Shown here: one piece after another, positions 13,516-45,300 of the stretch | Position numbering within the stretch: position 1 is the first letter of the stretch | Layout of the letters: the number at the start of each line of letters is the position of its first letter | Assembly: GCA_977016875.1 (NCBI GenBank) | Contig: CDRNST010000093.1 | Span: forward strand, 744,001 to 808,000 | Direction of reading: 5' to 3' | DNA length: 64,000 nucleotides | Source of the DNA: Pavona decussata | Taxonomy: Eukaryota | The notes under the pieces: generated by a model | Told to the model about the DNA's origin: nothing | Seen by the model: only the letters and a program-made list of their open reading frames with translations | Database searches by the model: none | Made by a program: the position numbers and the translations under genes

Positions 13516-14470
13516 GTACCTAGTGCGTATTTTTGGCTTCTTAGGAAAATGAGTTTTTTCGGCTTTTCGGTTGAAGTCGAAACTTCTTCGAAACTTAGTC
13601 AAGACTATTTTATGACGGTTGTATTTTTTGGCGTAAACTCAACCTCCTGGTCAGGATCTGTCTCCTGCCAGTCGATGAAAACAAGTGTCGTAGAAGACCA
13701 TCGAGTGGTGAAGTGGTCTTCTGTAAACGTTGAATAATTGATTCCATCCAGCGATATTGCATCTCACTGATGTACACCTTTGTGTGAAAATAGGAGAAAA
13801 TCCCATGCATTGTCACGGGAAGTTATAATAAAAATATTGTAGATGTGTATTTCAGGAAGTTATAAAGGCATTAAAGTGATCCTATCCCTTTGAATTAATA
13901 GGGAAGTTCTCTTATTATGATTCCACTCAGAAATTAGCATCTCTCGGCTAATTGGTCACAACCTTGGACACTGAACACTTATATCTTCTTATAAGATCAC
14001 ACAAATATCCCGCCGCATAAGCAACATATATCGAGACATCAGGAATCATTCGCCACGGTAGTCGTTGACACAACGCATTCCTGTGATGTTTTTCGCCGCC
14101 AGTATTCCAAAGTATACAACTAAACGGCTGTCTTTTAATCGAGGCTAGCACTACAAGTCTATTTCGCAACATTGACCTCGTATGAAACGCAAAAACCACT
14201 GTGACGAAGGAAAAACGCGTAATTATTGCCTCGTGGTCTAAATAAATGTTGACGTCAATTACGCTATAGTCTACTAAGAAAGCCTCTGCCTAAAGCTATA
14301 AGCTCACGCAGACAAGATTCTGGCAGATAATTTGTTCTTCGTGTTCGAGTAAAGTGAACTGCTTCACGTACAATCTAAACATTCTTCTTGGAGAGTTAAG
14401 AGGAAGAGAAGTTCAACTGTTGCGCTTCAGCGAAATCAAGAACAGAAGCGTCATCTTAGTTACTTCAGAA

Positions 14471-22663: not shown

Positions 22664-23652
22664 ATGAACACAACGGTGAATGGATCAAGCTGCTCCATTC
22701 AGTTCAATCCTAGATCAGCCAAAATTGGTAAGACTGTTGCTTTCTGGCTGATATTCGTCGTATCGCTGCTTGGGGATTTCTTTATAGGAATACTTGTTTA
22801 CAAAACTCAAACTTTGAGAAAACCAATCAACTTTTTCATTGCCAACATGGCCATGTCCGACCTGCTGTATCCAATATTCTTGTTCCCGTGGAATCTTACT
22901 CTGTTGCACGTGGGCTCCTGGCTGCTCAGGGGTTCTCTTGGCCAGGCCTTGTGTAGGCTGGTTCCTTTCCTGATAACTGCATCCAGTTTTGTGTCTATTC
23001 AGAGCCAGTTTCTAATAGCCGTGGATCGATTTGGAGCTGTGATGTTTCCACTCCGTTCCCCACTCATCAGTTCAAAGCTGTGCCCCTTCTTCATTTTCGC
23101 CACGTGGATCGTCGCGATGGCCGTCTCTTCGCCATCTTTATTCGCCAACCTGAACTTTTTGAATACCCGGGACGACGTTTCTGTCGTATGCTGTGAAATG
23201 AAGTCTTAAGAGAGTCCTCTTCGGTTGCAAATTACTTCACTGCAACATTTGTTGTATTCCTCTACATCCCCATGGCCTTGTTAGCTATACTTTACTCCAT
23301 CATCCTTATCAAGCTCAAGTCACAGAAGATTCAAGGCGAACAGTCGGCCAACACTAATGAGCAGCGTGCGAAAAGAAACAGAATTTAAGTGCTAAAGATG
23401 GTCATTGCGATCGTGTTAGACTTTGTGTTGTGCTGGGTACCCTTTAGTATTGTTAAATTGTTGAAATTCTTTGTATGGGACAACAAAGTATCCTGTGGCA
23501 TGTCACTTTACTGGTCTATTGCCTTGTTTATGGCTCGAGGAAGCAGTGCCATCAATCCTTGCATCTGTTTCATTTTCAGTGGGAACTCTCGCGGAGCTCT
23601 TAAGAGACTCCTGAATTGTTCTAGAGGCGCTCGACATGTGCAGAAAGAGTAA
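22664..23652 (+). pseudogene. Class A GPCR pseudogene of a different subfamily from the tandem copies
   Basis: TM1-4 in ORF 22664..23209 (LRKPINFFIANMAMSD, DRF); TM6-7 in ORF 23389..23652 (CWVP, NPCIC). Frameshift near 23150 and a TAA at ~23386. Confidence 0.85.
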
Positions 23653-23743: not shown

Positions 23744-23941
23744 NNNNNNNNNNNNNNNNNNNNNNNNNNNNNNNNNNNNNNNNNNNNNNNNNNNNNNNNN
23801 NNNNNNNNNNNNNNNNNNNNNNNNNNNNNNNNNNNNNNNNNNNNNNNNNNNNNNNNNNNNNNNNNNNNNNNNNNNNNNNNNNNNNNNNNNNNNNNNNNNN
23901 NNNNNNNNNNNNNNNNNNNNNNNNNNNNNNNNNNNNNNNNN
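23744..23941. other. Assembly gap (N run)
   Basis: 198 N. Confidence 1.
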
Positions 23942-26369: not shown

Positions 26370-28968
26370 TTAAACTCTTGTTCCAGTGTCTATTTTGGCC
26401 AAACGACAGATTCCTTGAAGAAGCAACTCTGGCACTTTCTCGATATCGAGAGAGGGCGGCTCATCATTCTCAACTGAGGCACTATTAAGGTCTGTCTCCT
26501 CTTCATCTTCTTTACCTGCGTCTTCACTGACATTCTCGGCCATTGGTGTAACTTTCTGTTGACCTGGTTTTCTATTGCTCCCTTGAGATGTGTTTCGCCC
26601 TGTCTGTTTGTCTTGTCCCTTCTTTTTTCTCTGTTTATCTTTCTTCGGTAATTTTCCCTCGCTCTTTTCTTCTGTAAGCTTTATTTCCATTGGCTTTCTT
26701 CGGACGTCGGTCAAAACAGCCATCTCAGTGGGAAAATTCGACGGAAAATCTATGGCAAACTGTCCCTTTTGGTGGTTCAAGGACAAACTTATGTCATGTG
26801 TTTTTGTATCTCTGCTTGTTCCAGTGATTTGGAAGAACTTCTGAAGAGCACCATGGATCTTTCCGAAGAGCTGCATTCCGTCCTCTGTGGAGTACCACTG
26901 CTCTGTTTTGGTCTCAGCTTCGTTCGCTGTTGCTGCAGTTGGTCCAACTACTTCCAAGGAGTCAGACACTCTTTCACTATGGTAACGGTGAAAACGACGA
27001 TCTTGTGAGAAAGGACCAGTTTCAAGGAGGCGAAAACCACTGTCTCCTTCTAGTGTTTCTGAAAGAAGAACGAGAAACCAAACATTACGTTCGCGTGGAG
27101 TACTTTTTTTTAAGAGTGGCTGAGTCATTAAGTCAATTGTAGTCAAAAAAACTAATCACCTACACATCTCAGGAAAGTTCATTACTACAAAGCTTTCAGT
27201 CGTATACAGCTTCTTACTTGCTTACGTCTACACCAGGTGTGCACTAATAGAAGTGTAATCTAATTTTTAAACATTTTACTGTAATAGATGAGTTTTAATC
27301 GGACTAATAAGTTTGCCTCGAGTACAGAAAAATTCCTAGTCGGTCTACCACCCATCGCAACCGATAACGGCATAAGAAGAACTGTATGACAATGTTTGTT
27401 TGTTTTTTTTATTTTCCTGAAAGCTGTTAGGCAATCTTGATAGTTTCATTGTCAAGAATATATCAAGAATTATATCAATTATAGATTGATCCAAGGTCTG
27501 TCAAGAGATTTCAGTATAAAAATAAATCATGGAGCGGGAAGAAGACATTAATTACCGATCACTCCGTCCAATTGTTTTTCGTGATAAGAACTTTTCTGAG
27601 AGACACGGAGCTCCACTTTCATTCTTTTCTTGTCGGAAGACAATCCTACTGTCATCTTGACAAAGCAAAGCGACTCCTCGTCGATTTCGCTCTCACCTGC
27701 AATTTAAAATATATTAAAGGCTCATGGTCTCACCAAATATAAATAAATAAAACGGTATATGGCACTCGTTACAAATAATTTACAACTGTTGTCATACTTT
27801 CGGTAGCAAATCACACTGCTGTCGTCGTTGGTATTCGCCTCTTCAAATGAAATAAAATAATAAATAAATGGGAATTTCAGTGGAAATCCGCAGAATAACT
27901 TTTTTGTCCGCTGTTTCCTGATTGAATTGGAAAGGAGATACAGTCCCTACTTGCATGTTTATAACCCCACCTTATAAGGCTAACCAGATTTGTTTTCGTC
28001 TTTCCAAACATCTCAACAAACTCGAAATCTATCAAATGTGTCTGCATTTTAAAATATAATATTTGAAAAGCACCCACTTCGATCGCAGTGAAATTAAATA
28101 CATTTTTTAAAGAACTGAAAACTAATATCAGATTCTATTGTGGTTTGTCTTTGTCGAGCCCCAAGGTAGGGCGATGGTGCTTTTAAAGTTGGGTAAAACG
28201 GCGTTAGAACTTGTAAACGGCATTTTTTTTCATTAAAATTAGCGCTGGAAATTAAAATAACCGAATGGCAGATGTGCTTTAAACTAACCCCTACAAGCCC
28301 ACTTGTAATTTGAATAGAAAAATATAAATTTCTGAGAAAATTCCCATTGAAAACACCGTTGCCATGGTAACATCAAATTAATGTAATAACACAAGCATGC
28401 AACACACTTTCAGCAGATAAATGTTCGAAAAAAAATAATCAAGTGTGGTAAATTTTGGTTGACTATCTGTCCGTGCGTGTAGACCCCCCCCTCCCCCCAC
28501 CCCACAATCCCCTTCCGGTATGGTGTGAGGGAAACTTAGGCTAGCGCTTTGCATCCTTGTTTGTCTAATACTGTCACGCTCGCTAGAAATCTCTGATTTT
28601 AGAAGGGTTTGCAGCTAAAACACTATCACCAGAGCGTGAACATATGCATGGGACAAAAACTGAAACAGGCACAGAAATCGTGGAGTTATTATGATCGGGA
28701 ACGCCGAAGTCGCTCAAGTTATAATTTAGCTTTTCTTACCTGCATCAGCAGTACTCCAGTTTCCTACATGTCGTAGACCGTGGGTTTCCTTTATATCGTC
28801 TTTTATGAGCTTCCTCTCTTTGAAGTCTGGGTCTCCAATAATATACTGAATGACTGGCTGATACGAGTGAGTCCACAGGCCGTACAGTTGTCCTTTCGTC
28901 GTCTTCGCTTCGATGAGGCGCCTGATCTGCTTCATCTCACCTTCGTGGATTGTAACTGTTACGCTCAT
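26370..28968 (-). CDS. 3-exon gene, 352 aa: degenerate JAB/MPN-like domain + Cys-less E2/UEV/RWD-like domain + charged tail
   Basis: Exons 28968-28740, 27696-27556, 27058-26370. All introns are GT-AG and phase 1, giving 1059 nt in frame. N-terminus: VTIHEGE..GQLYGLWTHSYQPVIQYIIG..HGLRHVGNWST..LEGDSGFR. Second domain: QWYSTEDGMQLFGKIHGALQKFF..QFAIDFPSNFP. Gene model is well supported; domain names are by-eye inference. Confidence 0.75.
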
Positions 28969-29108
28969 CTTTGTATTGTAGTGCTGAGGCGGCAGACTGT
29001 AAAAATTAAAAGTTAACAAACCGTCGAATAAAAGCAACAAACGGAAGAATGGTAGCAGCAGACCTGCGTTCCTGACTGAGAAACCAGGTGACCTTGAATA
29101 CCAGCTGA

Positions 29109-29148
29109 AGTTTCAGTTTCGAGCTCTTGTGGTAAACATTTCTTAGAA
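29109..29148. promoter_or_regulatory. ISRE-like element (AGTTTCAGTTTC) and GAS-like element (TTCTTAGAA) ~140-180 bp upstream of the JAB-like ATG
   Basis: Exact matches to AGTTTCNNTTTC (29109-29120) and TTCN3GAA (29140-29148). Function is inferred. Confidence 0.5.
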
Positions 29149-29579
29149 TTGAAATTTATACGCGTGACGTAATCTATTATTACCGGTTTTTCGCAGAACA
29201 GCAATATTAATTTATTCATGCATGGAATTCCAGTTGAAAAGAAACACAAATGTTCACCGAGCTCGTAGATACTGTCACATGCATTGTTATCGTCGTTCGA
29301 TCTTTGTTCTGGAAATCTTTAAGAATTCAACTCTAGCAACTTACACATCTCAATGATCTCTGTCTTTTGAACCGAAAATGATTCAGGGAAAAGTCCCATT
29401 TAGAAAATAGTGCGGGGATCATAATTCCGCTGATGTATTTAAAGGACAGTTTCGAGACTACATTCGTGATCCTGCAGCAAATTGCAAACCGTATACAACT
29501 TTTAATACAAGCTCAACCATTCTTCACCAAATTCCCCTGTGACTGAAATGTTGCAGCTGTATTTTTAGAACAAATGTGC

Positions 29580-29623
29580 GTTTCGTTTTCTCAGAAGCAT
29601 TCAGCTCCTGTGTGCATGCGCAG
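29580..29623 (-). promoter_or_regulatory. Composite cassette: TGCGCATGC + overlapping GAS/ISRE-like TTCTGAGAAAACGAAAC
   Basis: Reverse complement of 29580-29596 plus an NRF1-like palindrome at ~29614-29622. Same architecture as the cassettes upstream of E2-like copies 3-6. Confidence 0.5.
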
Positions 29624-29786
29624 ATTTGAATAAAAAATGAAACACTTCCGCCAAAGGAGTGATCAAAATAACCCATTAATAGATAGACAGCTGGGCTTGC
29701 GCATGCAGTGGTAGTTTGCTCGGGGTCGTCATCGAAAGAGCATTAAGACAGTGCTGACTTAGTAGCTTTCGCCGGGAGCCATCGTG

Positions 29787-30233
29787 ATGCCTTGGTCAGC
29801 ATCTCAGCAGAAGAGACTCGCTATGGAGAAAGAATTGCTCGAAAAATATTTCCGCAATAGGGTGACGTGGATCGATCCCGGACACCAAACCAAGGTCGAA
29901 GTACGCGTAACATGCACTAACGACAAACAGTACACGTTGAGGGTGTATCTACCGGACGATTTCCCAAACTCGTGCCCCAACATGGTTGTGAAAGCACCGA
30001 TGTTGCGATCATACAACAGATCTTTGTATCTGCACCAGTACCACGGTGACAACCACACAGGCTACAATATAGAGGGCTACTCTGGCATCTGCCACTTTAG
30101 ACCAAACTTGTGGCGATCCAACAACACTCTGTACCAAGTTTTGATGAAAGGTATGATTTGGCTGGAGGCGTATGAAGCTCATCTGCGAACTGGGCAGCCT
30201 TTGAGCAAGTACTTGAGCGAGATGTCGGGGTAG
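29787..30233 (+). CDS. Non-canonical E2/UBC-fold protein, copy 1 (148 aa)
   Basis: N-terminal helix KRLAMEKELL, strand segment ending YTLRVYLPDDFPNSCP (E2 YP.SPP-like), H...G..ICHF at the catalytic Cys position, W...NTLYQVLMKG. Five paralogs in the window. Confidence 0.85.
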   Translation: MPWSASQQKRLAMEKELLEKYFRNRVTWIDPGHQTKVEVRVTCTNDKQYTLRVYLPDDFPNSCPNMVVKAPMLRSYNRSLYLHQYHGDNHTGYNIEGYSGICHFRPNLWRSNNTLYQVLMKGMIWLEAYEAHLRTGQPLSKYLSEMSG

Positions 30234-31660
30234 ACTAAGAGGGTACACAAGCCGATTCATGGGGGAAGGCAATGATCCCAGACATGAAAAAATTGTTTCG
30301 TTTTGCAAAGTGACTATGAACCTGCTTGAACGTTAGAACTATTTTATGAAACTAGGCTATCCGACGCTTTCTAAAGAGGTCATTCTCTCTTATCAATGTA
30401 TATTTATAACTGTTCAGTTAGTGGAGACATTTTTGCGTTTGTTCTATAAGAGCTTCTTATTGTTGCAATTTTTCGTTTCGTTTCTTTTTAAATGTCTGAA
30501 ATAATGTAATGCCATCCATTCGGTGTTTCACTTGGCCAATAACAAGATTGTGAAACTGAATGTGCTATGCATGTGATTCCTCTATTTCTTGGAAATTGAG
30601 GATGTAAACATCGATCAACGAACGAATTGTTGTTAATATTTCGGTAAACTTAAAATTAAAAGCTTCAAAATAAGCTTGTCTTAGGTGAACACGCTTACTA
30701 CAACGTTTCTTGTGTCAAAACGCCTTTATATAAGATACATTTTAGGAATATTGATCACGTGATAATAAACTGAACAGCGCAACCACTTCCAACACGAAGG
30801 GAATCACTATATATGATGCCTTGAGAACAGAGAAAGGAGTAGACTATACCGATGATAGATAGGGAACTTGCTTTGTGTAGTTTTTGGGTAGATGGATTCT
30901 GTGTTCCAGAGCCAGTTCTTGTTCCTTTACTGTATCAAGTACATTTTTTAGCCTTTCACTTTCATTACCTGACTAAAATGGCCTGTCAAAGCTCGAAGAT
31001 AAAAGAAAATTCAAAGATGAAAGAATAACAAAATATGTGCGAAAAAATTGAATTATTAAACCATATCAATATACACAACAAACAGATTTATCAGCCTGCC
31101 AAAACCGTTTGAATTGAATACAAAGGAAGCAACATTATTTTCACAAACTGTTTAAAAGCTTGATTTTCCGAGAAAATTCGAGGTCTTCTTCAGAGGTAAA
31201 CAGCAGTTTCCAAGAAGTTTGTTGAAATATTATTGTATTTTGTTGCTAGTCTTTTGTCGTTGGCTTGCTGCCGTAAGAATTCATCACAAACGCTCGTGAT
31301 AAAAATCTGTGATACAATCATACTTCATTTTCAAGGAAGCTGGTGGATACGTTGAATGTGAGTGTGTTTAATGGAAATTAAAATGAAAAGGAAAAGGAAA
31401 TTAGTTGGCTAGAATGTGATATCTTTCGTCAAAAAAGGTACGTGGATGAACAACACTGTTTGCACCTCTGCAATAGCAATACCTCTTCATTATGTTTTGC
31501 CATTATATTTAACGAGGACGTCATTTATGTGTTGTAGCAGCTCTAACCTCTTACCAGCCACCCACGCATGCTCGACAGGAATCGATTCATTATTTCACCT
31601 TGAAAGCGTAAAACAGCTTTTCGCGCGCTACATTTATAGCCACGATCATATCTTTCCGTC

Positions 31661-32146
31661 ATGCCTTGGTCATTGAGCCAAAGCAGAAGGCTGGCGATTG
31701 AAAGTAGAAACCTTGAGAGAAGCTTCGACCGTGACAAAGTTAAATGGATCAAGCCGACTGGTGATACACAAGTTGAAGTGAAAGTAACATGTAGTAACGG
31801 CAAAAACTACACTATCAGAGTATATTTACCATCTGACTTTCCCAATTCTTGTCCAGAGGTGGTGGTCATCTCTCCTTCCAGCGGTCTACTTGCAAGGAAA
31901 GACGGTTCTCTGATGAGAATGATGAATGGCTACGACCACATTTTACCCAGCAAAGATGGTTACACTCAAATCTGCCACTTTCGTCCTGACTTGTGGAGGG
32001 ATAATAACACTATACACCAAGTGATCATGAAAGGTCTACACTGGCTGGAAGCTTATGAGTTGTATCTTTTGACTGGTGCTTCAATTAGTCTCTGCTTACA
32101 AGCATGTGAAAGCTTCTTTTTCGATGGTGTTGTTATGGAACTATAG
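31661..32146 (+). CDS. Non-canonical E2/UBC-fold protein, copy 2 (161 aa, divergent, extended C-terminus)
   Basis: MPWS start, YLPSDFPNSCP, DH...GYTQICHFRP, WLEAYE. Confidence 0.85.
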   Translation: MPWSLSQSRRLAIESRNLERSFDRDKVKWIKPTGDTQVEVKVTCSNGKNYTIRVYLPSDFPNSCPEVVVISPSSGLLARKDGSLMRMMNGYDHILPSKDGYTQICHFRPDLWRDNNTIHQVIMKGLHWLEAYELYLLTGASISLCLQACESFFFDGVVMEL

Positions 32147-34353
32147 AGCTTTCAAGAACTAATACGATACGTACAATCTTTTGAAAGACTCATGCCACTT
32201 CGATATGCGTATTATAATGACGATAGAAACAATGAGCTTGCTCACTCAGTTGACTCTAAATAATAGCATACTTGGTATGTTCATTGTACAGTCAATCAGA
32301 ATACATTTGTAAAGAGACTTAATTGGGAGAAGAGCAAAGCGAGAGACACTGGACAGTTAATTATTTGAGCTGTACTTCCTACCTGTGTTGTTTTCGGTTG
32401 CTACCGAGTCAGCTTTATTTCATATCTTTCATATCTTATCATATAGCAGGAAAGTGATGTGATGTTTTGATCATGTTAGCGGAACCGTTTTGTAAATCTT
32501 TTTAAATATTCCTCATATGTTTATCTAAATTATACATTTGTCTCGCTAGGAAATGATATTTCCATACATACAAACGGATCTGCATGTAAACAAAGACCGG
32601 ATGTCGACTTCTTGGAAACGGAGGAAGCAAAAAAAGTTCGTTTATATTAGTATTGAACCAGCCCTGAAAATTCAAAGCCAGGCAATATTGTAAAATAGTA
32701 TATGCAAAGACGAAACAGGAAAATAATAAAACTGAGAAAAGGTTTTACCCGGAGAAGCAACATTAGAACAAGTTTGAAATAGCAATTGTGTCAACACTTG
32801 ATCAATAAATATAAAGATTATGCAGAAGTTTGCAGAGCATCGGTGACCTTCCCTTCGATCGTAGGTTTCTCGGTTCTTGTGTTCTTAATCAAAATAGTCA
32901 TGACTTCATGACTTTGTTCGTGTCTCAGTGCCTTAGATGAACCGGTGAAGATCAAAACATAAAGCCGGTATATTTCGGTACATGTAGCAATGGGGGACTG
33001 CAAAGGGAAGTCACGTAGCGTCTGCTCAGTTGAAAGATCAACTTCATTATAACTAAAATTCGAGACCCAGCTGTAAAACAGTAATCAACTTATAGTCCTA
33101 AATCGTGTAGTGTGGCAAAAGCAACCGTATTTCTTGCACCAGTTGTGGTACTGTTTTGATAGCCTGTTATAGCCGTCGACTTAACCAACGAAGTGTATCA
33201 ACTGAAAAAAAAAGGTGATATTTTGGCTGTTTAAGCTGTTGTTTTCCTTCTTTCGTAGCCTCGTTCATTGATTGATGTATCGACCACAAATTTAATATAT
33301 TATTCAGCGTTTTTGACATTGTCGAATTATGTCCTTGACGCCTCAAATTTCCGAGAACTGAAAGGTATAACAATGCTGATAACCAAATCCGTTTTCCTTC
33401 TGCTTCAGTCCTTGAGCAATCAGCCAATCTATCTGTTACTAAAATTTCAAGAGGTTCAAACAGCCACAAAACCCATATTGCATTACCTGCTTTAAAAGAG
33501 AAAGATATTTTCATAAATTCCTGAAAGAGTTGCAGCTAATGTTAGCTTCCACAAAGTAGACACGAGCATTCTAGGTATATACAAACTCGATGTGGGTGTA
33601 TTTATCTCCATCAAGTATGATTGTAAATATGGTCTCCAAACTAAGAGACGACTTCCCTTGGCTCGTTTACAGTTTAGAATTCTCGTCTAAATCATCGATT
33701 CTTTATTCTCCATATTTCGAATACTTGTAACAGCGAATAAGCGCGGAACTTCTGGAACTTTTCAACTGGTTAGAATTTATGTACAGGTTCAAACTGCTAT
33801 CGCATTCTGAAATGGTTGGACTCCGGTCGATTTTACTCTCCAGAAGATTAACAGCGTTTCATCGCCATAAATCTTGCACTAGATCTCTAGCTTTAAAACA
33901 TTTGTGTCCCTCTATTTAACTCATCAATTGTTGAGGAGACGTATAAAGCAACTGAGGGCCTTAACATGTACACTGAATAAGAGTGGTCTTGAGTCCAAAG
34001 GAAGATGTGCAAATGTGGAGAGGTGTAAAGTTTTCCACTATTTTAGAAATAATCATAGTTTAAAGATAATAAAGCAAGTCGGGACAAAATTTGCTAAGTA
34101 CAGCGTGCTCTGTTGTTTATGCACTGAACCTTACCTTTTGATCAGCGTGAATCCGTTGATTGTAACGGCGACAGAATTGGCGAAGGAAACCTTTTTACAT
34201 GCAGAACAAATGAACCAACTGTTTTGACTCAATTTATTGTGAGTTAGTCTTCAAATAAAACCCAAACATTCCAGGAAAAGCTCAAACGTGGCTGAATTCA
34301 CCGTCTACCGCTCTTTCCTAGAACTGATGGTTAATGTTTAATTGAAAAAGTAA

Positions 34354-34563
34354 NNNNNNNNNNNNNNNNNNNNNNNNNNNNNNNNNNNNNNNNNNNNNNN
34401 NNNNNNNNNNNNNNNNNNNNNNNNNNNNNNNNNNNNNNNNNNNNNNNNNNNNNNNNNNNNNNNNNNNNNNNNNNNNNNNNNNNNNNNNNNNNNNNNNNNN
34501 NNNNNNNNNNNNNNNNNNNNNNNNNNNNNNNNNNNNNNNNNNNNNNNNNNNNNNNNNNNNNNN
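34354..34563. other. Assembly gap (N run) inside the E2-like array
   Basis: 210 N. Confidence 1.
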
Positions 34564-36397
34564 TAACTAAAGACAATTGTCAATAAAGAAAGAAAGTGAA
34601 GAATGACTTGAACAGTTTGCTAGGAAGGTCTAAGACAAACAATCTGCCGTAAGTAGTATACAACGAACCATTCTGCTGCACGCTATAAGAATTGTGAACA
34701 TTGGACTTTCACACTAGATTATGTTACGTTACGCTGTTTTTGTATATTTGTCTTTGTACACCCACCGGTACCCCGTAAAAGGTGAAAGGAGCTTGGTATT
34801 AGGCCCCTCCGTATAACCTAAGACCAAACATGTAACTAATTACAGACAATTACCAATGAAGAAAAAAAGAAAGAACGAAAAAAGAAAGAAATAACTCGAA
34901 AAAAATATAGCTCAGTTATCACTAATTTGTACGTATGAGTTTTGGATAGGTTGCGCTAATAATTTCATGTAAACATAACGGAGGAAGAAGAATAAGGAGA
35001 AGCCGGAAAGAGGTATCGAGGTTTCTTTGACAAAATTACATTATCTGGTAAAAATTTTTGCGTTTTTACTTAGGTTTTATAGCCCCTGATGAATTAAGGT
35101 TAGTTTTCTCTGAGAAAAACATTGGGGGCTGTTCGACCTGCCTTGTGTGTTAACAAAATTTAGTTCAAAGTGGTGATCTAAGGCTCCTTACCTATGTTTT
35201 TTTTTTTATATATATAATATATCGAAGATCACTATCGTTTGCTCGATTGTTAAATTGTAATGAGGAAGTTACTTTTTTTTTCTGACCAAGGATAACATCT
35301 CGTCAGTGTCTGGCTAAACAATCCGAATGATTTATTATACAAGTAAGTCTGCACATGCACTAACGTCCAAGAAGAAGAAGGCGTTCTAAAGTGTTGGAGT
35401 AAACGTGTAAAATTAAATGTTCGTCATTTAGTCTGCGCCAATTTAGAGTCTTTTAAATAGCTTTTATTAGTTTGTTCTGTTAGTATTAGCTGGACGTAGA
35501 AAATATTAGGAACTGGCAGTTTCATCCACCGCTAAATTTTCGAGGTGTTTCAAAAAATAACTTATATTGTATTCAATAAGACATTTTATCAGCCTCTACT
35601 CCCGGAAAACAAATGGCATCAATTTTATGCCAAAACGATTTTACAAGAGTTATTTAAGTATGCCTAATACGAGCCGGAAGACTTATTCACCGAAATTTCT
35701 TTAAATACCCAGATGAATTTCATTCATAGTTTATTTATTTTCCCTGTTTCATGTCTATTAAACCGTTGAAGATACCTTCTAATAGAATGATCTACGTATA
35801 CAGAAATGTCACGTGGAATGACATTATTTAATACTATTAGTGCTAATTCTGTGATTGAAATAAACAGTATGACATTCCTCTATTCCAAGTTCACAAGGAG
35901 AAGAAATTGATCATTGCATAATTTATTCATGCATTGAATAAATTTTCTACCCAAGTGCAATTAAACAAAAGCCAAATCATGAACACAAATTGTTCAATTC
36001 TTCTGTGATCAACTTGCAGATCTTGAAAATATACTCTATAAGGAACAAAGAAGCCATATTTCCAACCAGCTGGATATTGAGATAATCGTTAACATTGACA
36101 TTTAAATAAATTTTATTTCAGTTTCGCTTCACTTCCTGAATTAAATGCTCTATGGGTCACTCGAAAGTTTTAATGTTATCTTCATGCTCAAGCGAATCAT
36201 GCATCTGCTATTCTCTTCTTTGCCCATGGCGATGAAAGAAACACACACACGCATTTAATTATTTAATTTAATCACGCTTCCTTCGACAAGGTGAATGTAA
36301 AAGCTTTGTCTACATAAGACGTTTGGAATTTGGAAAACGCAATATATAATGCTTTTCTTAGAAATGTTTGTTTTCATTCAAGTGTATTTCAGACATC

Positions 36398-36430
36398 TGC
36401 GCATGCACCAAGTTCGAAGAAATCGAAAAC
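36398..36430 (+). promoter_or_regulatory. Composite cassette TGCGCATGC-N6-TTCGAAGAAATCGAAAAC
   Basis: GAS-like site starts 125 bp upstream of ATG 36538; conserved among the paralog promoters. Confidence 0.5.
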
Positions 36431-36537
36431 GGAAGCATGCAAACGGGGAATTAAAGTCTACATTGACTGGTTCAATCAATTGTCACGCGAAACAATATTA
36501 ACAAAATCATTGTTGAAAACGTCCTGACCTTCTTGTC

Positions 36538-36978
36538 ATGCCTTGGTCGGCAACACAACGGCAGAGACTTGCATTTGAGAAGTCACTGCTGGAAAAGTAC
36601 TTTCGTAACAGAGTTTCTTGGATCGACCCAGCAGGCGACGCAAAGGTTGAGGTCCGAGTGACATGCACCAACGACAAACAGTACACGTTGAGAATTTATG
36701 TACCGCAAGACTACCCTAACTCCGTGCCTCATATGATTGTGAAAACACCATGGATGACCACGCTGAAAAAGCGAGACGGAAGGGAGTTGGAAGGCATTGC
36801 CGATCACACTTTAGGAAGTCGTGATGGCTGTACCTTGATCTGCCATTTTAAGCCAGCGTTATGGAAGGATAACAACACGCTTTACCAGATTTTCATGAAA
36901 GGTTTGATCTGGCTGGAGGCCTACGAGGCTCATTTGCGCACAGGAGCAACTCTAAGTAGATATCTGGCAGAAATGTGA
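36538..36978 (+). CDS. Non-canonical E2/UBC-fold protein, copy 3 (146 aa)
   Basis: MPWSATQRQRLAFEK, YVPQDYPNSVP, DHTLGSRDGCTLICHF, WLEAYEAHLRTG. Confidence 0.87.
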   Translation: MPWSATQRQRLAFEKSLLEKYFRNRVSWIDPAGDAKVEVRVTCTNDKQYTLRIYVPQDYPNSVPHMIVKTPWMTTLKKRDGRELEGIADHTLGSRDGCTLICHFKPALWKDNNTLYQIFMKGLIWLEAYEAHLRTGATLSRYLAEM

Positions 36979-38059
36979 ACGCCTTGGTGATCTCCATCAG
37001 GCTGCTGTACCGAATTGAATAATCTTGTCTTATGACTGCCTATTCCTGCCGACTATATGATATGTGTTGGTCCGGCATTTCTTCAAAGAGAGCAGGAACA
37101 ACCTGCTCAGACATAATCATTTGACTTGTATTACAGTTTGATGTCTAGAAATTAATACCGTAATAAATAATACTAACAGCACTAAAAATGATTTTCACAT
37201 TTTTGGACGTTTGTAGTAGCGTTCTTTCGTATAGAATGAGCTCATAATTATATCAGTGTGAACCTATGAGGAAACATCTAATAGGAGATGGTAAATAGCA
37301 TAAGATGCACACAGTGTTACATGACAAACACCAACAACCACAACAAAAACAATCATAACTATATTTACCTTTGTTGTCCGAATGAAGCGATGCAGGTAAA
37401 GATAAAGTCAGTATAAGAAAGCGTGATATATTTATGCCGAAACAGAATAATTTAAAAGTGTACAATTTTCTTTCCATGAACCAGAAACTGCAAAATGAAA
37501 GGTTGCAAATTTGTCATTAATTAATAAAAGCCACGTTTCAATTCTTCAAGGATGTCAAGCTCTATACTTTTAAGTGTGTCTTATTTCTTTGAAATTCTGG
37601 ATCATATGTAATTATGCATGATCAGACTGCTTTAGTGCCAAAGTGACCAAGATTTAACTTGAACCTAAACAGGCCAACTTATACTGTTTAATGAAATTAT
37701 TACGCCATAGAAACTCTGAGTCTTTTACTTAAATGTCTCCTTACTGCGGTAGCAAACTTCCTATTTTGAATGAGGACGAATACAACCCTGATAGACCTTG
37801 ATATCCTGGCAGCGGCGATTTCGTTACTTTTCATTCGTCGGATTGAATGGCGTAAACAGTTTTCCACGAAATTCACTCGCAGGCATGATGAAACTGAGAT
37901 GTTTATCGGTATTTCTAGATAATCATAACGGCTCTTTCCGTGTGAAATTGACAGCGACCTCTTTGGTATTTTTGACACTGGGCCGGCATAGACGGAATCG
38001 AATGGTTTTTCCCAGAAGCGTTCGTTTGTTCGGCAGTCGAGCGAATCTGACAGTCAGTC

Positions 38060-38092
38060 TGCGCATGTACCAATTTCAGCGAAAGCGAAACT
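38060..38092 (+). promoter_or_regulatory. Composite cassette TGCGCATG-N7-TTCAGCGAAAGCGAAACT
   Basis: Contains the perfect ISRE-type GAAAGCGAAACT overlapping TTCN3GAA, 145 bp upstream of ATG 38220. Confidence 0.55.
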
Positions 38093-38219
38093 CCAGGAAC
38101 GTAAATAAGAAACTGAACTAAATTAAAATTCGTGTTTCTTGCTAGAAAACAGTACTGAAATTGTGTACAAATATTGAAAGAGCGTAACATTAACATATAG
38201 AAACGTCTGCAATCTCATC

Positions 38220-38667
38220 ATGCCTTGGTCAGCAACACAGCGGCAAAGACTCGCGTTTGAGAAGTCACTGCTGGAAAAATACTTCCATAACAGAGTTTCT
38301 TGGATCGATCCGACAGGCGACACAAAGGTTGAAGTGCGAGTGACATGCAGCAACGACAAACAGTACACGTTGAGAGTTTATCTGCCACAAGCCTTCCCTA
38401 ACTCAGTTCCTCCAATGATTGTGAAAACACAATGGATGACTACGCTGAAGAAGCGAGACGGAAGAACCGATTTGGGAGGATCTCAGTAGTGATCATACTT
38501 ATGGAATCCGAGATGGATGCACCCAAATCTGCCATTTCAGGCCAGAATTTTGGAAAGATAACAACACACTGTACCAAGTTGTCATGAAAGGGTTGATATG
38601 GCTGGAAGCGTATGAGGCCCATTTGCGCACAGGAGCAACTCTAAGTAGATATCTGGCAGAAATGTGA
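38220..38667 (+). pseudogene. Non-canonical E2/UBC-fold protein, copy 4, single +1 frameshift (pseudogene or sequencing error)
   Basis: ORF stops at 38489. Removing one base near TTGGGAGG (~38472-38479) restores DLEDLSSDHTYGIRDGCTQICHFRPEFWKDNNTLYQ...YLAEM* (148 aa). Confidence 0.85.
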
Positions 38668-40132
38668 ATCGCTGTTCAAGACTGACCAATGTATGTAGTT
38701 AGAGTTCAATGTGGGAAAATGTCAGTGAAATTTGCTGTCACAGTGACATAAAAACTTGTTAAAGCAAATAAAATTTCGCGATGCAAGGAAACTTTTCTCC
38801 AGCCGGAAAGCTCAACGTTCAGGACCAGAGGTCATTTTATTCTAGAGAAATAGGAAAACGATCAATGAATAAAAATGTTTGTCTAAAAATTACATGAATT
38901 CCTCAATTTATGCCGACGTGGTCAATCAGGTACGTAGGCAGACGGAGGTGAAAAGAATTCAGAATGTTAAATACAATATCAACAAATAAAACAAAACATT
39001 ATTTGTACCTTGGAACTGTAGTCTAATGGGGCAATCCTCGTATCAGATGAAATCAAAGTAGGAAAAGGTGATCTTTTTTCCACCAGTTGTTGCGATCAAA
39101 AAAATATAATGTACTTGCGTTCAATAGCAACTGACTAAATAAAAGTTGGTCCACTGAGCGGTATAGTGGTAGGTTGTAAGATCACTGTACTGAAACCGTC
39201 ATAAAATGAGGCTATAACTTGATATTTGCCAATGGCGTTTTGTGATATGTGATTTTACTCATTATGCATGATTTCTTGGAAATCCAGGATGTGTTGACAA
39301 TCATTTACATTTCAGACATTTCAACTTGAACTCTGGAACTACACCAAATCATTCCTATTATAAAAATTAGATATTCTGTTTGAGGTGGTTTGATTGCACA
39401 GAAAAGATGATCGAAATAAGTATGATATGAGCAGAAATCGGAAGACTTCAAATGTCGCTATTCAATTTGTAGGGTTCAAAGGCCACATACAAAATTTTCC
39501 ACGAAAACCACTGTGACGAATACGCGTATAATTTTACATACCTCTAACGGTATTTCTTGGAACTGAGACTTTGCATGCTAAATTATAACAGATATTAGCC
39601 TGAAGTATTTTAAATAAGAGCGGCGAATGGGTTTACTAGTTGCTAAAATTTTATTTTGTACTTTTACTTTCTATAGCAAATGAATCAGAATTAGAACGCT
39701 AGACTGAGAGAGACTGAGCGAAGCATAGGAACATGTCACGTTCGGTTCCGCTGAGAGCGTGATCTTAGTTGAGTTCCCGGCGTTTGGCTTTTGATAGCAT
39801 TATCCAAAAATACTAAAATCAGTTTGGAAAGAGAAATTCTTCTCATTCTTAGCCGGTAAACAGTAAACGCCGTTACATTCCAGGCGTATTCCTATTTTTT
39901 TTTTTTTAATCATAACTGTAGGTTTACTGAAGATCCCAGTTGATGATTTAACCGAATTCATCGATACTCTCGAATCATCAGCTTAATTGACAGTTTTCCC
40001 CCTAAAACTTACCTCAAATAACCATTCAGTGTTGCAGCAAAGGTAAAGCAATGTTAACACAGCCTGGTATTGATTATTCGAGCGCTGAGAAATTTGGTAA
40101 TCTTGGGTGTCAAGCTGTTGATCTGACTCTTC

Positions 40133-40165
40133 TACGCATGTGAGATTTTCCGAGAAAATGGATCT
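40133..40165 (+). promoter_or_regulatory. Composite cassette TACGCATG-N7-TTCCGAGAAAATGGATCT (GAS intact, ISRE half degenerate)
   Basis: 139 bp upstream of ATG 40287. Confidence 0.4.
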
Positions 40166-40286
40166 AAGTGAGTGAAACCACCAAGGAAAACAGAAACCTT
40201 ACACCTATTGCTTCTTGTCAACTAACCTTGCAAATAAGGAACCACTTGCGATTTTTTTAAGCCGGAGGGTTTTCGATTCTTTCATC

Positions 40287-40739
40287 ATGCCCTGGTCAGC
40301 ATCCCAGCAACAAAGGCTAGCGTTTGAAAAGGATTTGTTGGAGAAATACTTTCGCGGCAGAGTGTCCTGGATTAATCCAACTGGCGACACGAGAGTTGAA
40401 GTCAAAGTAACTTGCACCAACGACAAACAGTACACGCTTCGAGTGTACCTGCCTTCAGACTACCCAAGCTCTTGCCCAGAAATGGTTGTGAAGTCCCCCT
40501 ATTGGTTTGGTGGCTATTTGAAGAAGAAAGATGGCACTAAGATGAATGATGCGGATGGTGAAGATCACACCTATGGCAACCGAGATGGCTGCACGCAGAT
40601 TTGCCATTTCAACCCGTCTTTGTGGCAGGACGACAACACATTATATCAGGTGTTCATGAAAGGATTGATTTGGCTGGAAGCTTATGAGGCTCATCTTCGC
40701 ACTGGAAAATCCCTGAGCACATATCTGCGAGAGATGTAA
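40287..40739 (+). CDS. Non-canonical E2/UBC-fold protein, copy 5 (150 aa)
   Basis: True ATG at 40287 (MPWSASQQQRL); YLPSDYPSSCP; DHTYGNRDGCTQICHF. Confidence 0.87.
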   Translation: MPWSASQQQRLAFEKDLLEKYFRGRVSWINPTGDTRVEVKVTCTNDKQYTLRVYLPSDYPSSCPEMVVKSPYWFGGYLKKKDGTKMNDADGEDHTYGNRDGCTQICHFNPSLWQDDNTLYQVFMKGLIWLEAYEAHLRTGKSLSTYLREM

Positions 40740-41674
40740 CTGTGCTTCTCTCGAACTGCAGAAATAATCACTCTTTTCTGCTGCAGGTTTAGTTTATTTA
40801 AGCCATGTGAGCTAAGCCTACGTTTTGAACTGTTCCGTGAGCTAGTGTACCGTGATCAGTTATGTTTAGCGATACGATTTCTCCGTTCGGTGAAGTCTAC
40901 ACATTTAAAATTATATTAAATCAGTAGGACATGACCATGATCGATGATCAATAATATAGATTGTAAACAAACGCAGAAATATCATCATAGCTAGCAAGCA
41001 GGCTGTACTTCTTGTAATAGAATCAGCCAGTATTCTTTTATACAATCATGACAAAGAATTAAATAGGTGCAAAAACTCTATGCAGACATTTTCTTTCAAA
41101 TTTCCAAACAGTGAATCAGGGTTTAATTTAACCTGCCGCAAAATAATAAGACAGCCCTTCCCCCCCTCCCCCCCCCCCGCCCCGCCTCGGAGAAGATTGG
41201 GGGAGGGAGAGGGCTTCTTTTTGAGCTTTTTACGGGCAATTACGTAGCACATTTTGAATAAGACGCATCAGTGGCTGATTTCTTAGAACCGCTCCGGATA
41301 CAGTTAACTTAATTGAGCATAACTTAACTACAGTGCTGTTCGCAAATGATTTAATGGCATTTCTGTTTTTAGCATTTTTCACTCGAAAATGTTGACCATC
41401 GAATTTAAAAGACAATAACAACAAAACCTTCGTTTCGTGGATTGCTGGAAGCAAAGCTGGGTGGATTCCTCGTAATTAACTCCGTGGAATAATGTGAAGA
41501 TTAATAAATTTGAGTTTCCGAGGAGAATTTCTAAGATGACCACAGTGTCACCTGTAAATGTTCTAGCCGTGGATTCATAAATATATTTTCTTTTCAAAAA
41601 TATTGGCTGATCATCACCAGATCATGCGGTCACCGGTATGTAGAACATGTTGAAAATTTCACTTCCGCCTTGAC

Positions 41675-41750
41675 TTCCGGGAATCATTTGTTTACATTTT
41701 CAATCCATTCCAGCATCTACGCATGTGCTATTTTCCAAGAAAGCGTAACT
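41675..41750 (+). promoter_or_regulatory. TTCCGGGAA (STAT consensus) plus composite cassette TACGCATG-N7-TTCCAAGAAAGCGTAACT
   Basis: 41675-41683 and 41718-41750; the cassette's GAS starts 155 bp upstream of ATG 41888. Confidence 0.5.
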
Positions 41751-41887
41751 CAGTAAGTAGGGCAAAAACCCAAGCGCACACAATAGTCGACATTCGCCAT
41801 TCGAATCTTCAAGAATCTTCTTTGCTTCTGATCTAGCATAGCGGCGCTCGGTTTGGTTTTGCAATTCACATCGTTCTTCGCAGCATC

Positions 41888-42331
41888 ATGCCTTGGTCAG
41901 CAAACCAGCGACAAAGACTCGGGTTTGAGAAGGATTTATTAGAGAAATACTTTCGAGGCAGAGTGTCTTGGATTAATCCAACTGATGACACAAGAGTTGA
42001 GGTCAGAGTGACTTGTACCAACGACAAACAGTACACGCTCAGAGTGTACCTGCCATCAGACTACCCAAGCTCCTGCCCTGATATGATTGTAAGCAGCGCT
42101 TCATCCTGTTTGAGAAGAAAAGATGGTTCTTCCATGAGTGGCATGAACGGAAGTGATCACACCTTAGGAACCAGAGATGGGTGCACAAAGATTTGCCATT
42201 TCAACAATAGCCTGTGGAAGGATGACAACACTTTATATCAGGTCATCATGAAAGGCCTAATTTGGCTGGAAGCTTATGAGGCGCATCTTCGTACTGGGAA
42301 TCCACTGAGTAGATATTTGGCAGAAATGTAA
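41888..42331 (+). CDS. Non-canonical E2/UBC-fold protein, copy 6 (147 aa)
   Basis: MPWSANQRQRLGFEK; YLPSDYPSSCP; DHTLGTRDGCTKICHF; WLEAYEAHLRTG. Confidence 0.87.
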   Translation: MPWSANQRQRLGFEKDLLEKYFRGRVSWINPTDDTRVEVRVTCTNDKQYTLRVYLPSDYPSSCPDMIVSSASSCLRRKDGSSMSGMNGSDHTLGTRDGCTKICHFNNSLWKDDNTLYQVIMKGLIWLEAYEAHLRTGNPLSRYLAEM

Positions 42332-45300
42332 TTTTTCGGAGCTTTGATTGTGGAGGAAAATGTTAACAGAACAATCGTAATGTTTCCCACAGGACTCTGG
42401 TATTGTTTCGTTATAATAATAATATATCACTTGATGTTGAATATAGGCGCTTAGCGCATAAATTAACTAGAGAACGCATCCGGCCTAGCTGCACCTTCTT
42501 GTTCAAGTTAGCAAACACTAACATTGCAACTGCCCTAAGTTAACGTATAGTGAATTTTGTACAGATCTTTGAATCTCAAATAGCTAGATTGAAATACCCT
42601 GTCGCTAGTATAATTATCAAATATGAAAGTGTTTAGAAGAAACAAGGATTGAATTTTTGTGGTTGAGGGGCTTTGTTAGTAAAGTGAAACCGAATGTATG
42701 CAAATTAAGGCGTCGATTCTTGGAAATACAGGAACTTATAAAAGATAAAAATAAAAGTATTGTCAAAAGGATTGGATTTCGAGGTGACTGTGTGCGTGAG
42801 GGAGGGGATAACAAAGATTTGACAAAGGGATTAGAGCGAGCAACATAATAAATCCTTGGGGTAGGGAGGGGTGGCTTTAGCACATTGGTGACTCCGGTGG
42901 GTGGGTGGGTTGGAGCTATTGGTTCTCCCCCACAACATCATTGTTAAGTGGTTACTGTTGATCTTTTAAATCCTGGCTTCCATTCTATAGACCCTAAAAC
43001 TATTATACCGGTGACAGCTAGCTGCAAGGCCAGGGAACTTGTTTCGATGGACGACAATCCAGCTTGATCAGTAACTAACTGAATAACTATTGCGTTTTTC
43101 AGGATTTATTTCAATTCTTTCGCGTAACGCTCGAGTAGCTGGCATCAGTGAGGAAATAAATTCCCTGCAAATTTCAGGTCTGTTAGTGTGAGCTCTCGCG
43201 TCAACTGCAGCGCCATGACCAGAATTGACACACCAAACTGTTACCAAATAAATTTCGGGAAAAGTCACAAAATTTGTGCATTTGTTCACACATTGAAAAT
43301 ATTATAATTGTTTAATGCCCGCGTGAGTAAGTTCATGTCACTTTTAACCTTTTTGTCATCTTAAGAGTCACGTAATCCAAAATGTGTTCATAGTTTTGCA
43401 GAACAGAGGGATGTGAACGAACTTGTAAATTTTAGAGAAATTGAGAAAATGAAGATTGAGAAGATTTCAGGCGATTGAAAATTAAATTTGGAGGTTAATA
43501 ATTAAGTGACGAACACCAAATGGTTGGCTACCAACCTGATGTGCACAAGCGTTGCTTAAGCGTGACTGAATGTGTGCATATGTCTTTTTTTTCTTCTTTC
43601 ATGTATATCACCCCCTTCATTCGTCCGATGCTTTCCAGAGTGAAAAACCGTGGAGAAAGAAACCGGTTTACCCGCGGACATGTGCCACTACTCGGTCACT
43701 ATTTTCGACAATACTTCCATGTGTAAGCGGTGAGAGACTAATCATAGATTAGATGGGTATTTCTTTATTTCTGTGGCGTATTAAACGGGGTCGACCGGAA
43801 AGCTCTTTATTTTTAGAATGGCAGCCAACGGCTCGCTGAGTCAAGTGCATAATGTTCCGCCGACACCGCATAAATTAATTGTCCAGAATAAATTGTGAAC
43901 GGAGGGAAACGTTCAGGAACGTTTTGAGCCGCTTGAGGAAAGTTTTTGGGCCGGAAGTGAAGGACGAAGAATCGCATTACAGACTCAAACTTCATAAGGT
44001 TATTGACCAAAGAATTAAGTTTGATAATTCATTCACTTTGAGTAAATGTTTAAGCAAAACTGTTGGGTTAAAGTTTTGTTTGAGTCATCAATCAGCTGCA
44101 AAACAATCGAGGAAATATTGCTAGATCTTCCTGAATGGCAGGTTTTCGCTTTGTAAGAACAAGCAGAAGACACACGGCTTGGTATAATGGCTCATATACC
44201 ATGGCTGCTAAGCCAATCGGATCCCTGGAATTGTAGTATACAATAATTCAGTTTTCAATAATGTGTTATATTTGTTAGATGTTGTCGTTGGACAAGCAAA
44301 TACACAAACAAAGAAAACAAAAACAATGGTGATCAAACAAGATCTGCAAAACGTTCCAACATCATTTGACCAAAGAAACGTTGGCAGACGTGGTTGGACT
44401 TTGCATAGTCCGATGTTATAAAAATATTTAATTTAATATTTCAAACTCAAGGGAGTCTCTTTCATCCGATTTCCTAACACTAAGAAAAGGGTTGAAATAG
44501 GAAAGCACAGCCAAGTTTTTTCTAGAACCAACTTTGGGGTGTTTGATATAGCTTCTCAAACCATTTGAGACCATTAGAAAATTTTTCGGAAAAATTCAAG
44601 GAAAAGTTTGCCAAATTTACTGATAAAGATCATATTTCCCAACCTCGTTCACGGTAGTGATTTCCTTTGTTTTCTGCTGGTGAATTGTCAATGTGTTTTA
44701 CATTTACTAACTTTTAACTCCGGAAACTATCTGGGCAATATTGGAGCATTTATCATAACTAAAGATTCAATTTTCGTTACTATCCATATCGAAAAAGTTA
44801 CCCTTTCATTTTGGGGGTAACAAAAGTATTTGAAATTAGCGCGCACAGGTTTACACCCCGTCTTACACAAAGACTCGAAGTCCAAGAAAATAAGCCTGGT
44901 CATTGTCATTCTTAGTTGCCATTGAACTATGGCGTTTAACAAGTGATAAACAACTAGTGCAACGATTTTACGATCACTGCTATTAGAATTTGCTCACGTA
45001 TCGGACGAAATTCCTGTTAAGACATACAATTAGTTTGCTTGCTCTGTTGACATATGTTAATATAAATTTATTACACTAGACGCTCGAGGTAACAGCGTAC
45101 CATACCTGAAAGATGTCTACATTTGGATTATACGGCATGAAGGAGGTGCCATCTCTCTTTATAGCGGAGCATCTTATTTAGGTTTACTGTTAGTTTTAAC
45201 TTCATCAGCGAACTAGATTTGCAGGGCCGTGAATATATTTTCCCTATGCAGAGTCTTTCTCTGAGCGAAAACAAGTATATCCCGAGGAACATGGGTGGGC

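Follow-up and report, generated by a model that had tools for sequence, protein, structure and literature searches.

A conserved STAT-type palindrome, in part running into an IRF-type repeat and accompanied by CGCATG, ahead of a tandem E2-like gene cluster in a stony coral

Introduction

What is the role of a short sequence block that recurs ahead of the genes of a coral tandem array, and which proteins might read it? The array lies at 29.7–42.4 kb of a 64-kb stretch of contig CDRNST010000093.1 (the window, whose coordinates are used throughout) and comprises six intronless plus-strand genes of ~147 codons each, whose products resemble ubiquitin-conjugating (E2) enzymes. A preliminary description of this DNA proposed that the E2-like genes are preceded by a composite promoter cassette, combining a gamma-activated site (GAS) with an interferon-stimulated response element (ISRE). 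In vertebrates, GAS elements are TTCN3GAA sites for STAT dimers in promoters that cytokines or interferon induce, the Drosophila STAT92E sites being their equivalent, and the ISRE or IRF-E has the form GAAANNGAAA (ISRE consensus A/GNGAAANNGAAACT). Cnidarians have an interferon-like antiviral gene programme without interferon. We focus here on the conservation of the cassette, on the factor signatures it bears and on what it might do for the E2-like cluster and a divergent neighbouring gene.

Conservation of the proximal cassette

First of all, the sites named in the preliminary description are present. The TTCNNNGAAANNG.. composites start at 36413, 38075, 40148 and 41733, with their TTC 125–155 bp ahead of the ATGs at 36538, 38220, 40287 and 41888, and the minor sites are found as ACGCATG at 31564, GAAAGCGTAAAAC at 31602, GAAACTGAAAC at 21611 and an inverted composite on the minus strand at 29581–29596. 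The composite RCGCATG-N7-TTCNNNGAA occurs four times in the 64-kb window against 0.02 expected, a count reached in none of 100 first-order Markov simulations, and each match stands 139–169 bp before an ATG of the family. Likewise, TTCNNNGAAANNGNAA has four matches in the window (0.44 expected), and the density of TTCN3GAA is 2.1 per kb in 29–43 kb vs 0.66 per kb in the remaining window. The proximal consensus reads caTCT[AG]CGCATG, spacer, TTTC-c-n-a-GAAA-n-CG-r-AA, with a spacer of 7 bp in 11 of 13 cassettes and an information content of 1–1.9 bits within the cassette and 0.1–0.5 outside it. The TTC and GAA arms are invariant across copies and the 3-bp centres differ, while the most conserved string, TTTCC.AGAAAGCG, extends past the STAT palindrome.

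Second, the cassette is conserved among corals. The compared arrays were those of four contigs of 20 kb each (L006, L007, L008 and L015) together with the short contigs L005 and L009–L012; they are syntenic with the window, orthologous subfamilies are recognisable, and the cassette stands at a matching distance before the homologues in four other coral contigs. In ~125 kb, both strands, of four coral contigs together with the short L010 and L011, all composite matches but one lie 112–191 bp before a family ATG, and the exception (L006 7604, at −406) seems to serve a truncated copy. Synonymous divergence (dS) is 0.7–1.3 between the window and its L008 orthologues and, where not saturated, 1.1–2.9 in comparison with L006 and L007; nearly all paralogue pairs are saturated, and the ratio of non-synonymous to synonymous divergence is 0.07–0.27. 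The upstream regions have otherwise diverged, as had been claimed: only 35–47% of columns align in orthologous 400-bp upstream regions, with identity islands sharp at the cassette, which forms the best local alignment in 54 of 66 promoter pairs (12 promoters, four genomes), and once the cassette is masked no promoter pair of 300-bp upstream regions scores above the shuffled maximum. Among single genes, the copy 6 cassette is near-identical over ~35 bp to that of L008 13976 with unalignable flanks, and the copy 5 orthologues L008 12007 and L015 6316 retain TTCnnnGAA(A).

Shared descent or gene conversion among tandem duplicates could also leave a common block that has no function, and the genes are indeed tandem paralogues, some of them recent duplicates (copies 3 and 4; L006 8010 and 10001). 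Between subfamilies, however, synonymous sites are saturated and flanks unalignable, conversion would homogenise the flanks and the N positions too, and the subfamily forms described below (copy 1 inverted, copy 2 displaced) are kept between genera; we regard this explanation as highly improbable. The cassette is more conserved than the neighbouring paralogous DNA, under neutral divergence that is saturated. Selection on binding sites, which the preliminary description had read from varying n positions between preserved arms, is supported as purifying selection across paralogues and genera, and these alignments show it acting on sites that bear STAT and IRF signatures. Polymorphism is uninformative here, L001–L004 differing from the window at 2 of ~10,400 aligned columns (the first 2499 bases of L003 and L004, which include the equivalent of an assembly gap, were left out).

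One further place in the window was considered as a cassette and rejected as an isolated match. At 21455 lies the only other RCGCATG-N7-TTC of the window (GCGCATG), without TTCN3GAA and with no family gene nearby. Across 21455–21621, GCGCATGC-N..-TTTC and a double GAAACTGAAAC (21611) stand 150 bp apart, representing either a chance match or a decayed promoter; the 21611 site bears out the earlier caveat that isolated motif matches occur elsewhere.

Factor signatures in the family promoters

Motif enrichment was assessed in 23 family promoters against 331 background tiles. TTC-N3-GAA occurs in 19 of the 23 promoters and in 74 of the 331 tiles, a 3.7-fold enrichment, and the same arms at spacings of N0–N2 and N4–N5 give 0.3–2.1-fold, which is not significant. 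The palindrome and the N3-only spacing by which STAT-binding (GAS) sites are recognised are thus both present, and the element is a candidate STAT site. As in GAS and STAT92E sites, the 9-bp palindrome keeps its arms and leaves a 3-bp centre free, with a bias to YNR, and there are several sites per gene, a few helical turns apart and within ~200 bp of the coding start. It differs from GAS in that its 3′ arm continues in the coral into more conserved letters (AAGCG or GAAA) and one copy lies downstream of the gene; moreover, no cytokine, receptor or JAK is established for corals, where the sites are putative. TTC and GAA are also the building blocks of the heat-shock element, bound by HSF as alternating GAA/TTC units, and coral genes are often heat-responsive. 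That element, on the other hand, needs a 2-bp spacing (TTCnnGAA, GAAnnTTC), and its word TTCNNGAA is at background (4/23 promoters, 41/331 tiles); with the wrong spacing, and only N3 enriched, a heat-shock identity was rejected and its probability is in our view very small.

GAAA-N2-GAAA is enriched 9.6-fold, other spacings being enriched 3.3-fold or less. Tandem GAAA half-sites 2 bp apart occur in 11 of the promoters and 20 of the tiles; the neighbour gene and copies 1, 3 and 4 have them, while copies 2, 5 and 6 do not. A full ISRE consensus is matched by the TTCAGCGAAAGCGAAACT of copy 4, the sole such match among the six copies, and by the GAAACTGAAACT of the neighbour, with near matches in copies 1 and 3 and several orthologues. 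In these full matches and in the exclusive 2-bp spacing the coral elements resemble an ISRE or IRF-E, from which they differ in a second half-site that is degenerate in about half of the coral cassettes. The earlier identification of STAT and IRF consensus sites therefore stands as regards the N3-only and GAAA-N2-GAAA-only spacing signatures and fails for about half of the IRF second half-sites, and a putative IRF reading is weaker than the STAT reading. ISGF3 partners STAT2 and IRF9 are vertebrate proteins, and any coral complex would differ. As a separate observation, the minus strand at 36116–36136, ~400 bp ahead of copy 3, reads GGAAGTGAAGCGAAACTGAAA, in which an ETS-IRF-like composite precedes an ISRE-like repeat.

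The partner of the palindrome is more frequent still, RCGCATGY occurring in 18 of the 23 promoters and in 5 of the 331 tiles. NRF1, Ewg and P3A2 recognise the palindrome YGCGCAYGCGCR. Likeness to it is seen in the GCGCATGC core of copies 1 and 3, in the promoter-proximal position and in the freedom of orientation, the 10-mer of copy 1 being the reverse complement of that of copy 3. The full palindrome GCGCATGCGC is nevertheless not attained, matches being 9/10 in copies 1 and 3, 8/10 in copies 4 and 6 and 7/10 in copy 5; only its left half (CT[AG]CGCATG) is conserved, and CGCATG is missing from most promoters of the Acropora-like L015. The resemblance to the NRF1 site that had been suggested is thus partial, and the coral word does not qualify as the NRF1 palindrome.

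The cassette may also be a real cis-regulatory module with other readers, namely a BCL6/Ken-type zinc-finger repressor, or ETS-family factors on (C/A)GGAAG words together with a CGCATG binder, in which case it would set cell-type or constitutive expression rather than immune induction. The BCL6/Ken-type site is TTCCTAGAAAGC-like and overlaps STAT sites. Such readers would account for a conserved string, TTTCC.AGAAAGCG, longer than the STAT palindrome. An unbiased ranking of 7-mers places CGCATG words, the strongest signal, first, followed by GGGGAAT, GTTTCCG, TTCCGAG, GCGGAAG, GAAAACG and GAAAGCG; GCGGAAG and GAAANNGGAA are enriched in the family promoters, and AGGA(A/T)G follows a conserved island downstream of the genes (below). 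To judge by the GGAAG variants, and by AGGAAG after that island, ETS-type factors may also use the site. A STAT-type dimer, however, predicts the N3-only spacing, and it is the middle of the palindrome that varies, both arms being preserved; the copy-1 genes and the neighbour, furthermore, have a full GAAACTGAAAC after the palindrome and not AAGCG. We consider these other readers somewhat unlikely, although they deserve serious attention. NF-kB, AP-1, E-box, TATA and CCAAT words are not enriched in the same 23 promoters against 331 tiles. GGGGAAT itself, which may be an NF-kB-like half-site or the word of another factor, occurs in 6 of 28 promoters vs 3 of 472 tiles, and lies ~40–48 bp after CGCATG in copy 3 (~36444), L008 8408, L008 13976 and L008 10001.

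Variant forms and further palindromes

Copies 1 and 2 depart from the common arrangement (Table 1). In copy 1 the composite is inverted and adjoins GCATGCGC at 29614, with a second GCGCATGC at 29699–29706. Its orthologues L008 2801, L006 1723 and L011 94 share the inverted composite, two of them as TTC-n3-GAAACTGAAAC, so that the inversion reported earlier is real and, being kept in four lineages including the window, ancient. The inverted element aligns with the distal TTCN3GAA of copies 3, 4 and 6. Copy 2, previously called degenerate, has indeed lost its proximal palindrome, but keeps TTCCAAGAA displaced at −453, and its orthologue L008 4385 has the identical 9-mer at −452.

Copies 3, 4 and 6, like several orthologues, have a second TTCN3GAA, placed 50–66 bp ahead of the proximal palindrome and often followed by a TGTTT(A/T)C-type stretch. 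In L015, where CGCATG is mostly missing, TTCN3GAA(A) is retained at ~−110 to −170 in nearly every promoter; the palindrome is the deepest element and CGCATG a lineage-restricted partner. A third TTCN3GAA, TTCTTGGAAA, followed by ~3 nt and AGGA(A/T)G, forms an island 350–610 bp past the stop of every copy in the window. Equivalents with unalignable flanks are found at L006 2690/4819, L007 5143/11194/16285, L008 5755/14811 and L015 5581/13532, and exact TTCTTGGAAA occurs 15 times in ~145 kb, base composition giving an expectation of ~0.5. This island could be a STAT/ETS-type enhancer or an element of the 3′ untranslated region; AATAAA lies within ~30 nt after it in some copies.

Given that the block stands 110–190 nt ahead of the ATG, it might instead be transcribed and act in the mRNA leader, where it would form an RNA element or an upstream open reading frame (ORF) whose start is the ATG within CGCATG. 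Good splice-donor words come right after the block in copies 5 and 6 (AAG|GTGAGT, CAG|GTAAGT), with an acceptor just before the ATG in copy 6. Orthologues do not conserve these donor and acceptor words, however; the module is also found inverted in the copy-1 genes, its palindromic arms point to a DNA dimer site, and Rfam gives no match in 27000–44000. The upstream ORF in particular was rejected, since the peptides range from M-stop to >40 residues with no conserved length or frame and, on direct reading of the cassettes, the letters that vary are not those in third codon positions. A role in the leader is improbable in our judgement.

Table 1. Positions of the genes, cassettes and related elements in the window
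Feature	Position	Strand	Description
Neighbour exon 1	28741..28968	-	ATG 28968, GT donor 28740
Neighbour promoter	29109..29198	-	TTCTGCGAA (29190-29198), CRE-like TTACGTCAC (29164-29172)
Neighbour promoter, continued		-	TTCTAAGAA + TGTTTAC (29132-29148), GAAACTGAAACT (29109-29120)
Copy 1 inverted module	29581..29621	-	GCGCATGC (29614-29621), then TTCTGAGAAAACGAAA (29581-29596) on minus strand
E2-like copy 1	29787..30233	+	148 aa, intronless; ORF and family alignment, UBC fold at family level
Downstream island, copy 1	30586..30606	+	TTCTTGGAAA, 3 nt, AGGATG
Copy 2 displaced TTCCAAGAA	31208..31216	.	at -453
Copy 2 remnant	31564..31614	+	ACGCATG (31564), GAAAGCGTAAAAC (31602), no TTCN3GAA between
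E2-like copy 2	31661..32146	+	161 aa, most divergent copy; ORF and family alignment
Downstream islands, copies 2-6	start 32609, 37585, 39273, 41280, 42717
Assembly gap	34354-34563	.	intergenic between copy 2 and copy 3; part of no element
Copy 3 distal TTCTTAGAA	36355..36363	.	58 bp above proximal, then TGTTT-type stretch; block conserved in L008 8408
Copy 3 proximal cassette	36399..36430	+	GCGCATG, 7-bp spacer, TTCGAAGAAATCGAAAAC; kept in L005, L008 8408, L010
E2-like copy 3	36538..36978	+	146 aa; AlphaFold2 model pLDDT 89.8
Copy 4 distal TTCCCAGAA	38009..38017	.	66 bp from proximal
Copy 4 proximal cassette	38061..38092	+	GCGCATG, 7-bp spacer, TTCAGCGAAAGCGAAACT
E2-like copy 4, broken	38220..38667	+	frame shift and in-frame stop ~38466-38490
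Copy 5 proximal cassette	40134..40165	+	ACGCATG, 7-bp spacer, TTCCGAGAAAATGGATCT; second GAAA half-site lost
E2-like copy 5	40287..40739	+	150 aa
Copy 6 distal TTCCGGGAA	41675..41683	.	58 bp from proximal, then TGTTTAC at 41689
Copy 6 proximal cassette	41719..41750	+	ACGCATG, 7-bp spacer, TTCCAAGAAAGCGTAACT
E2-like copy 6	41888..42331	+	147 aa

The E2-like genes and the divergent neighbour

A word search returned 147 relatives of the family, with identities of 53–99% throughout, the sole named ones being from Oculina patagonica and Acropora cervicornis. These are stony corals, so the window is scleractinian, in agreement with the earlier supposition that the host is a cnidarian. The family proteins fall mostly under the Pfam cut-offs for RWD and UQ_con. 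The AlphaFold2 model (mean predicted local distance difference test, pLDDT, 89.8) matches E2 structures in the PDB with a template modelling (TM) score of ~0.5 and an E-value of ~3e-3, giving a UBC-like fold, and Cys102-His103 is invariant in the family alignment. At family level the best matches are the PADLOC models for E2 proteins of the cyclic-oligonucleotide-based antiphage signalling system (CBASS), which hit 12 of 22 members with a best E-value of 2e-7; the products score higher on these CBASS-type E2 and E1-E2 models than on the eukaryotic UQ_con. With this fold and these scores, the label 'E2-like' is fair, and the six products, judged by such matches, hint at an E2 family of prokaryote type that has expanded in stony corals. 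The best PADLOC models, the UBC fold and the invariant Cys-His pair are what they have in common with CBASS type II E2 (Cap2-like) proteins. They differ in that the E-values are modest (2e-7 at best), the host is eukaryotic, each gene has its own promoter and no E1 or cyclase is seen near the coral genes, and the catalytic role of the Cys is putative. Fold and scores fit a defence role and do not prove one.

The best ISRE match of the array belongs to copy 4, even though this gene is frame-shifted at the least, if not a pseudogene. Its tblastn match is split in two (38220-38465 and 38488-38664), and the break is also present in L003 and L004, which are other assemblies of the same species; the frame is still open past the break, which suggests recent inactivation. 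The assembly gap at 34354-34563, 2.2 kb past the stop of copy 2 and 1.8 kb ahead of the copy 3 cassette, is touched by no element of the finding, and its edges show no family-like coding sequence by tblastn and no flanking repeat; it may conceal a further family copy. Long C-rich or G-rich runs, partly self-complementary, lie in or beside the array in intergenic DNA (41160-41215, 28495-28520 and 42840-42910).

Divergent from copy 1 lies a multi-exon gene on the minus strand (26370-29198) that is unrelated to the E2-like family. Its promoter holds two TTCN3GAA, a site like a cAMP response element (CRE) and GAAACTGAAACT, and L008 and L007 conserve each of these four blocks. The same elements are thus found on one unrelated gene and conserved in three genomes, and the shared motif set would be the minimum that a 'regulon' needs. 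Homologous DNA of the gene is detected in L008 and L007 by tblastn with an out-of-frame query, and the L008 exon-1 translation matches the window by eye; the last exon lies within the ORF 26370-27146 and is 41% identical to that of L007. Taken one exon at a time, the protein has no Pfam family. Its last exon gives a single weak PADLOC JAB match (E 0.004), and the N-terminal exon is loosely MPN-like with no JAMM residues visible.

Proposed mechanism

We propose that a STAT-type palindrome, partly IRF-fused and CGCATG-partnered, co-regulates the E2-like cluster and the neighbouring gene, most likely in innate immunity, a proposal to which we give an even chance. Each gene of the cluster would be driven by a compact, selectively maintained cis-regulatory module, whose invariant core is the TTC-N3-GAA(A) palindrome, a type of site to which STAT dimers bind. 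The 3′ arm of this palindrome runs, in about half of the genes, into GAAA-N2-GAAA, the type bound by IRF proteins, and in most lineages CT[AG]CGCATG[CT], an imperfect NRF1-type palindrome, sits exactly 7 bp upstream of the core, with the further TTC-N3-GAA 50–66 bp upstream and 350–610 bp past the stop adding to the module. A coral STAT, aided by IRF-family factors where the GAAA repeat is intact, may then bind and turn the whole cluster on together, the inducing setting being most likely an innate immune response, while the CGCATG factor may supply basal promoter activity. What we infer is which proteins bind, what signal induces the genes and where the module stands with respect to the transcription start. 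TATA-like words 10–30 bp past the cassette in L008 10001, L010 and copy 4 hint that transcription may start downstream of it.

Work so far in cnidarians makes such a mechanism plausible. In Nematostella, 2′3′-cyclic GMP-AMP (cGAMP) induces a single STAT and five IRFs whose DNA-binding residues are conserved (PMC8713801), an IRF2 and a STAT5A homologue are up in its immune cells activated by poly(I:C) (PMC13319465), and IRFs are expressed in the immune cells of Stylophora (PMC8162421). Promoters induced by poly(I:C) in Nematostella are enriched for vertebrate STAT, IRF, NF-kB and ETS matrices (PMC8476169). The general idea of STAT/IRF motifs in cnidarian immune promoters is thus already published, and what is new here are concrete individual elements; a partial literature search turned up no cnidarian for which single GAS or ISRE elements had been described. 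Both Lewandowska et al. 2021 (PMC8476169) and the present analysis concern cnidarians, the STAT, IRF and ETS families and an interferon-less antiviral programme. That study, however, rests on matrix enrichment over hundreds of genes with expression data, whereas the coral locus offers, from sequence alone, individual sites set by conservation across coral genera and a fixed architecture.

Several points weigh against the proposed mechanism. First, many copies, 5 and 6 among them, show GGAT, GTAA, GGAA or GAAT in place of the second IRF-type half-site, and with about half of the copies degenerate, IRF binding cannot be general. Second, the promoters share descent, so that the Fisher and binomial p-values of the enrichments overstate independence, although it is the saturated dS that gives these p-values meaning. 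Third, a factor assigned from its consensus is a lead and not a test. Fourth, no transcripts are found among the fetched Logan contigs (L005, L010–L014), which all look genomic, and TATA-like words follow the cassette in a few copies only and therefore cannot place the start site. Finally, partial knock-down of each IRF or of STAT in Nematostella left cGAMP-induced genes unchanged (PMC8713801), and the presence of JAK in cnidarians is stated both ways inside one recent survey (PMC13203501).

In a bolder version, which we think unlikely, the E2 genes that stony corals keep in a cluster would be prokaryote-type (CBASS Cap2-like), and they and a partner gene would be controlled by a STAT-plus-IRF promoter logic older than interferon. 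A defence module based on bacterial-style conjugation would then have been wired into an ancestral 'interferon-stimulated' programme, with the GAS-over-ISRE composite as the ancestral response element. Either way, the locus provides footprinted elements of ~30 bp with natural variants (inverted, displaced, with or without the IRF half and with or without CGCATG). Should these elements respond to double-stranded RNA or cGAMP, GAS/ISRE-type cis-logic would predate interferon and coral biology would gain a defined immune-reporter element. The E2-like proteins, for their part, may bring a eukaryotic branch into the CBASS-type E2 family.

Other features of the window

Upstream of the array are three tandem, near-identical genes for rhodopsin-type G-protein-coupled receptors (GPCRs) with repeated flanks (3379-4341, 8977-10104 and 14354-15547), and a fourth, more divergent and stop-interrupted GPCR-like gene (22664-23650) that adjoins a second assembly gap (23744-23941). 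Retrotransposon-like repeated fragments lie between the GPCR genes (12757-13552, 18669-19238 and 7460-7951), among them a reverse transcriptase-like ORF on the minus strand (18678-19238); L007 holds, from 17239, a full endonuclease/reverse transcriptase ORF. On the minus strand at 55900-61100 are exons of a T-box transcription factor, with T-box peptides in the ORF 58363-58653 and near 56000.

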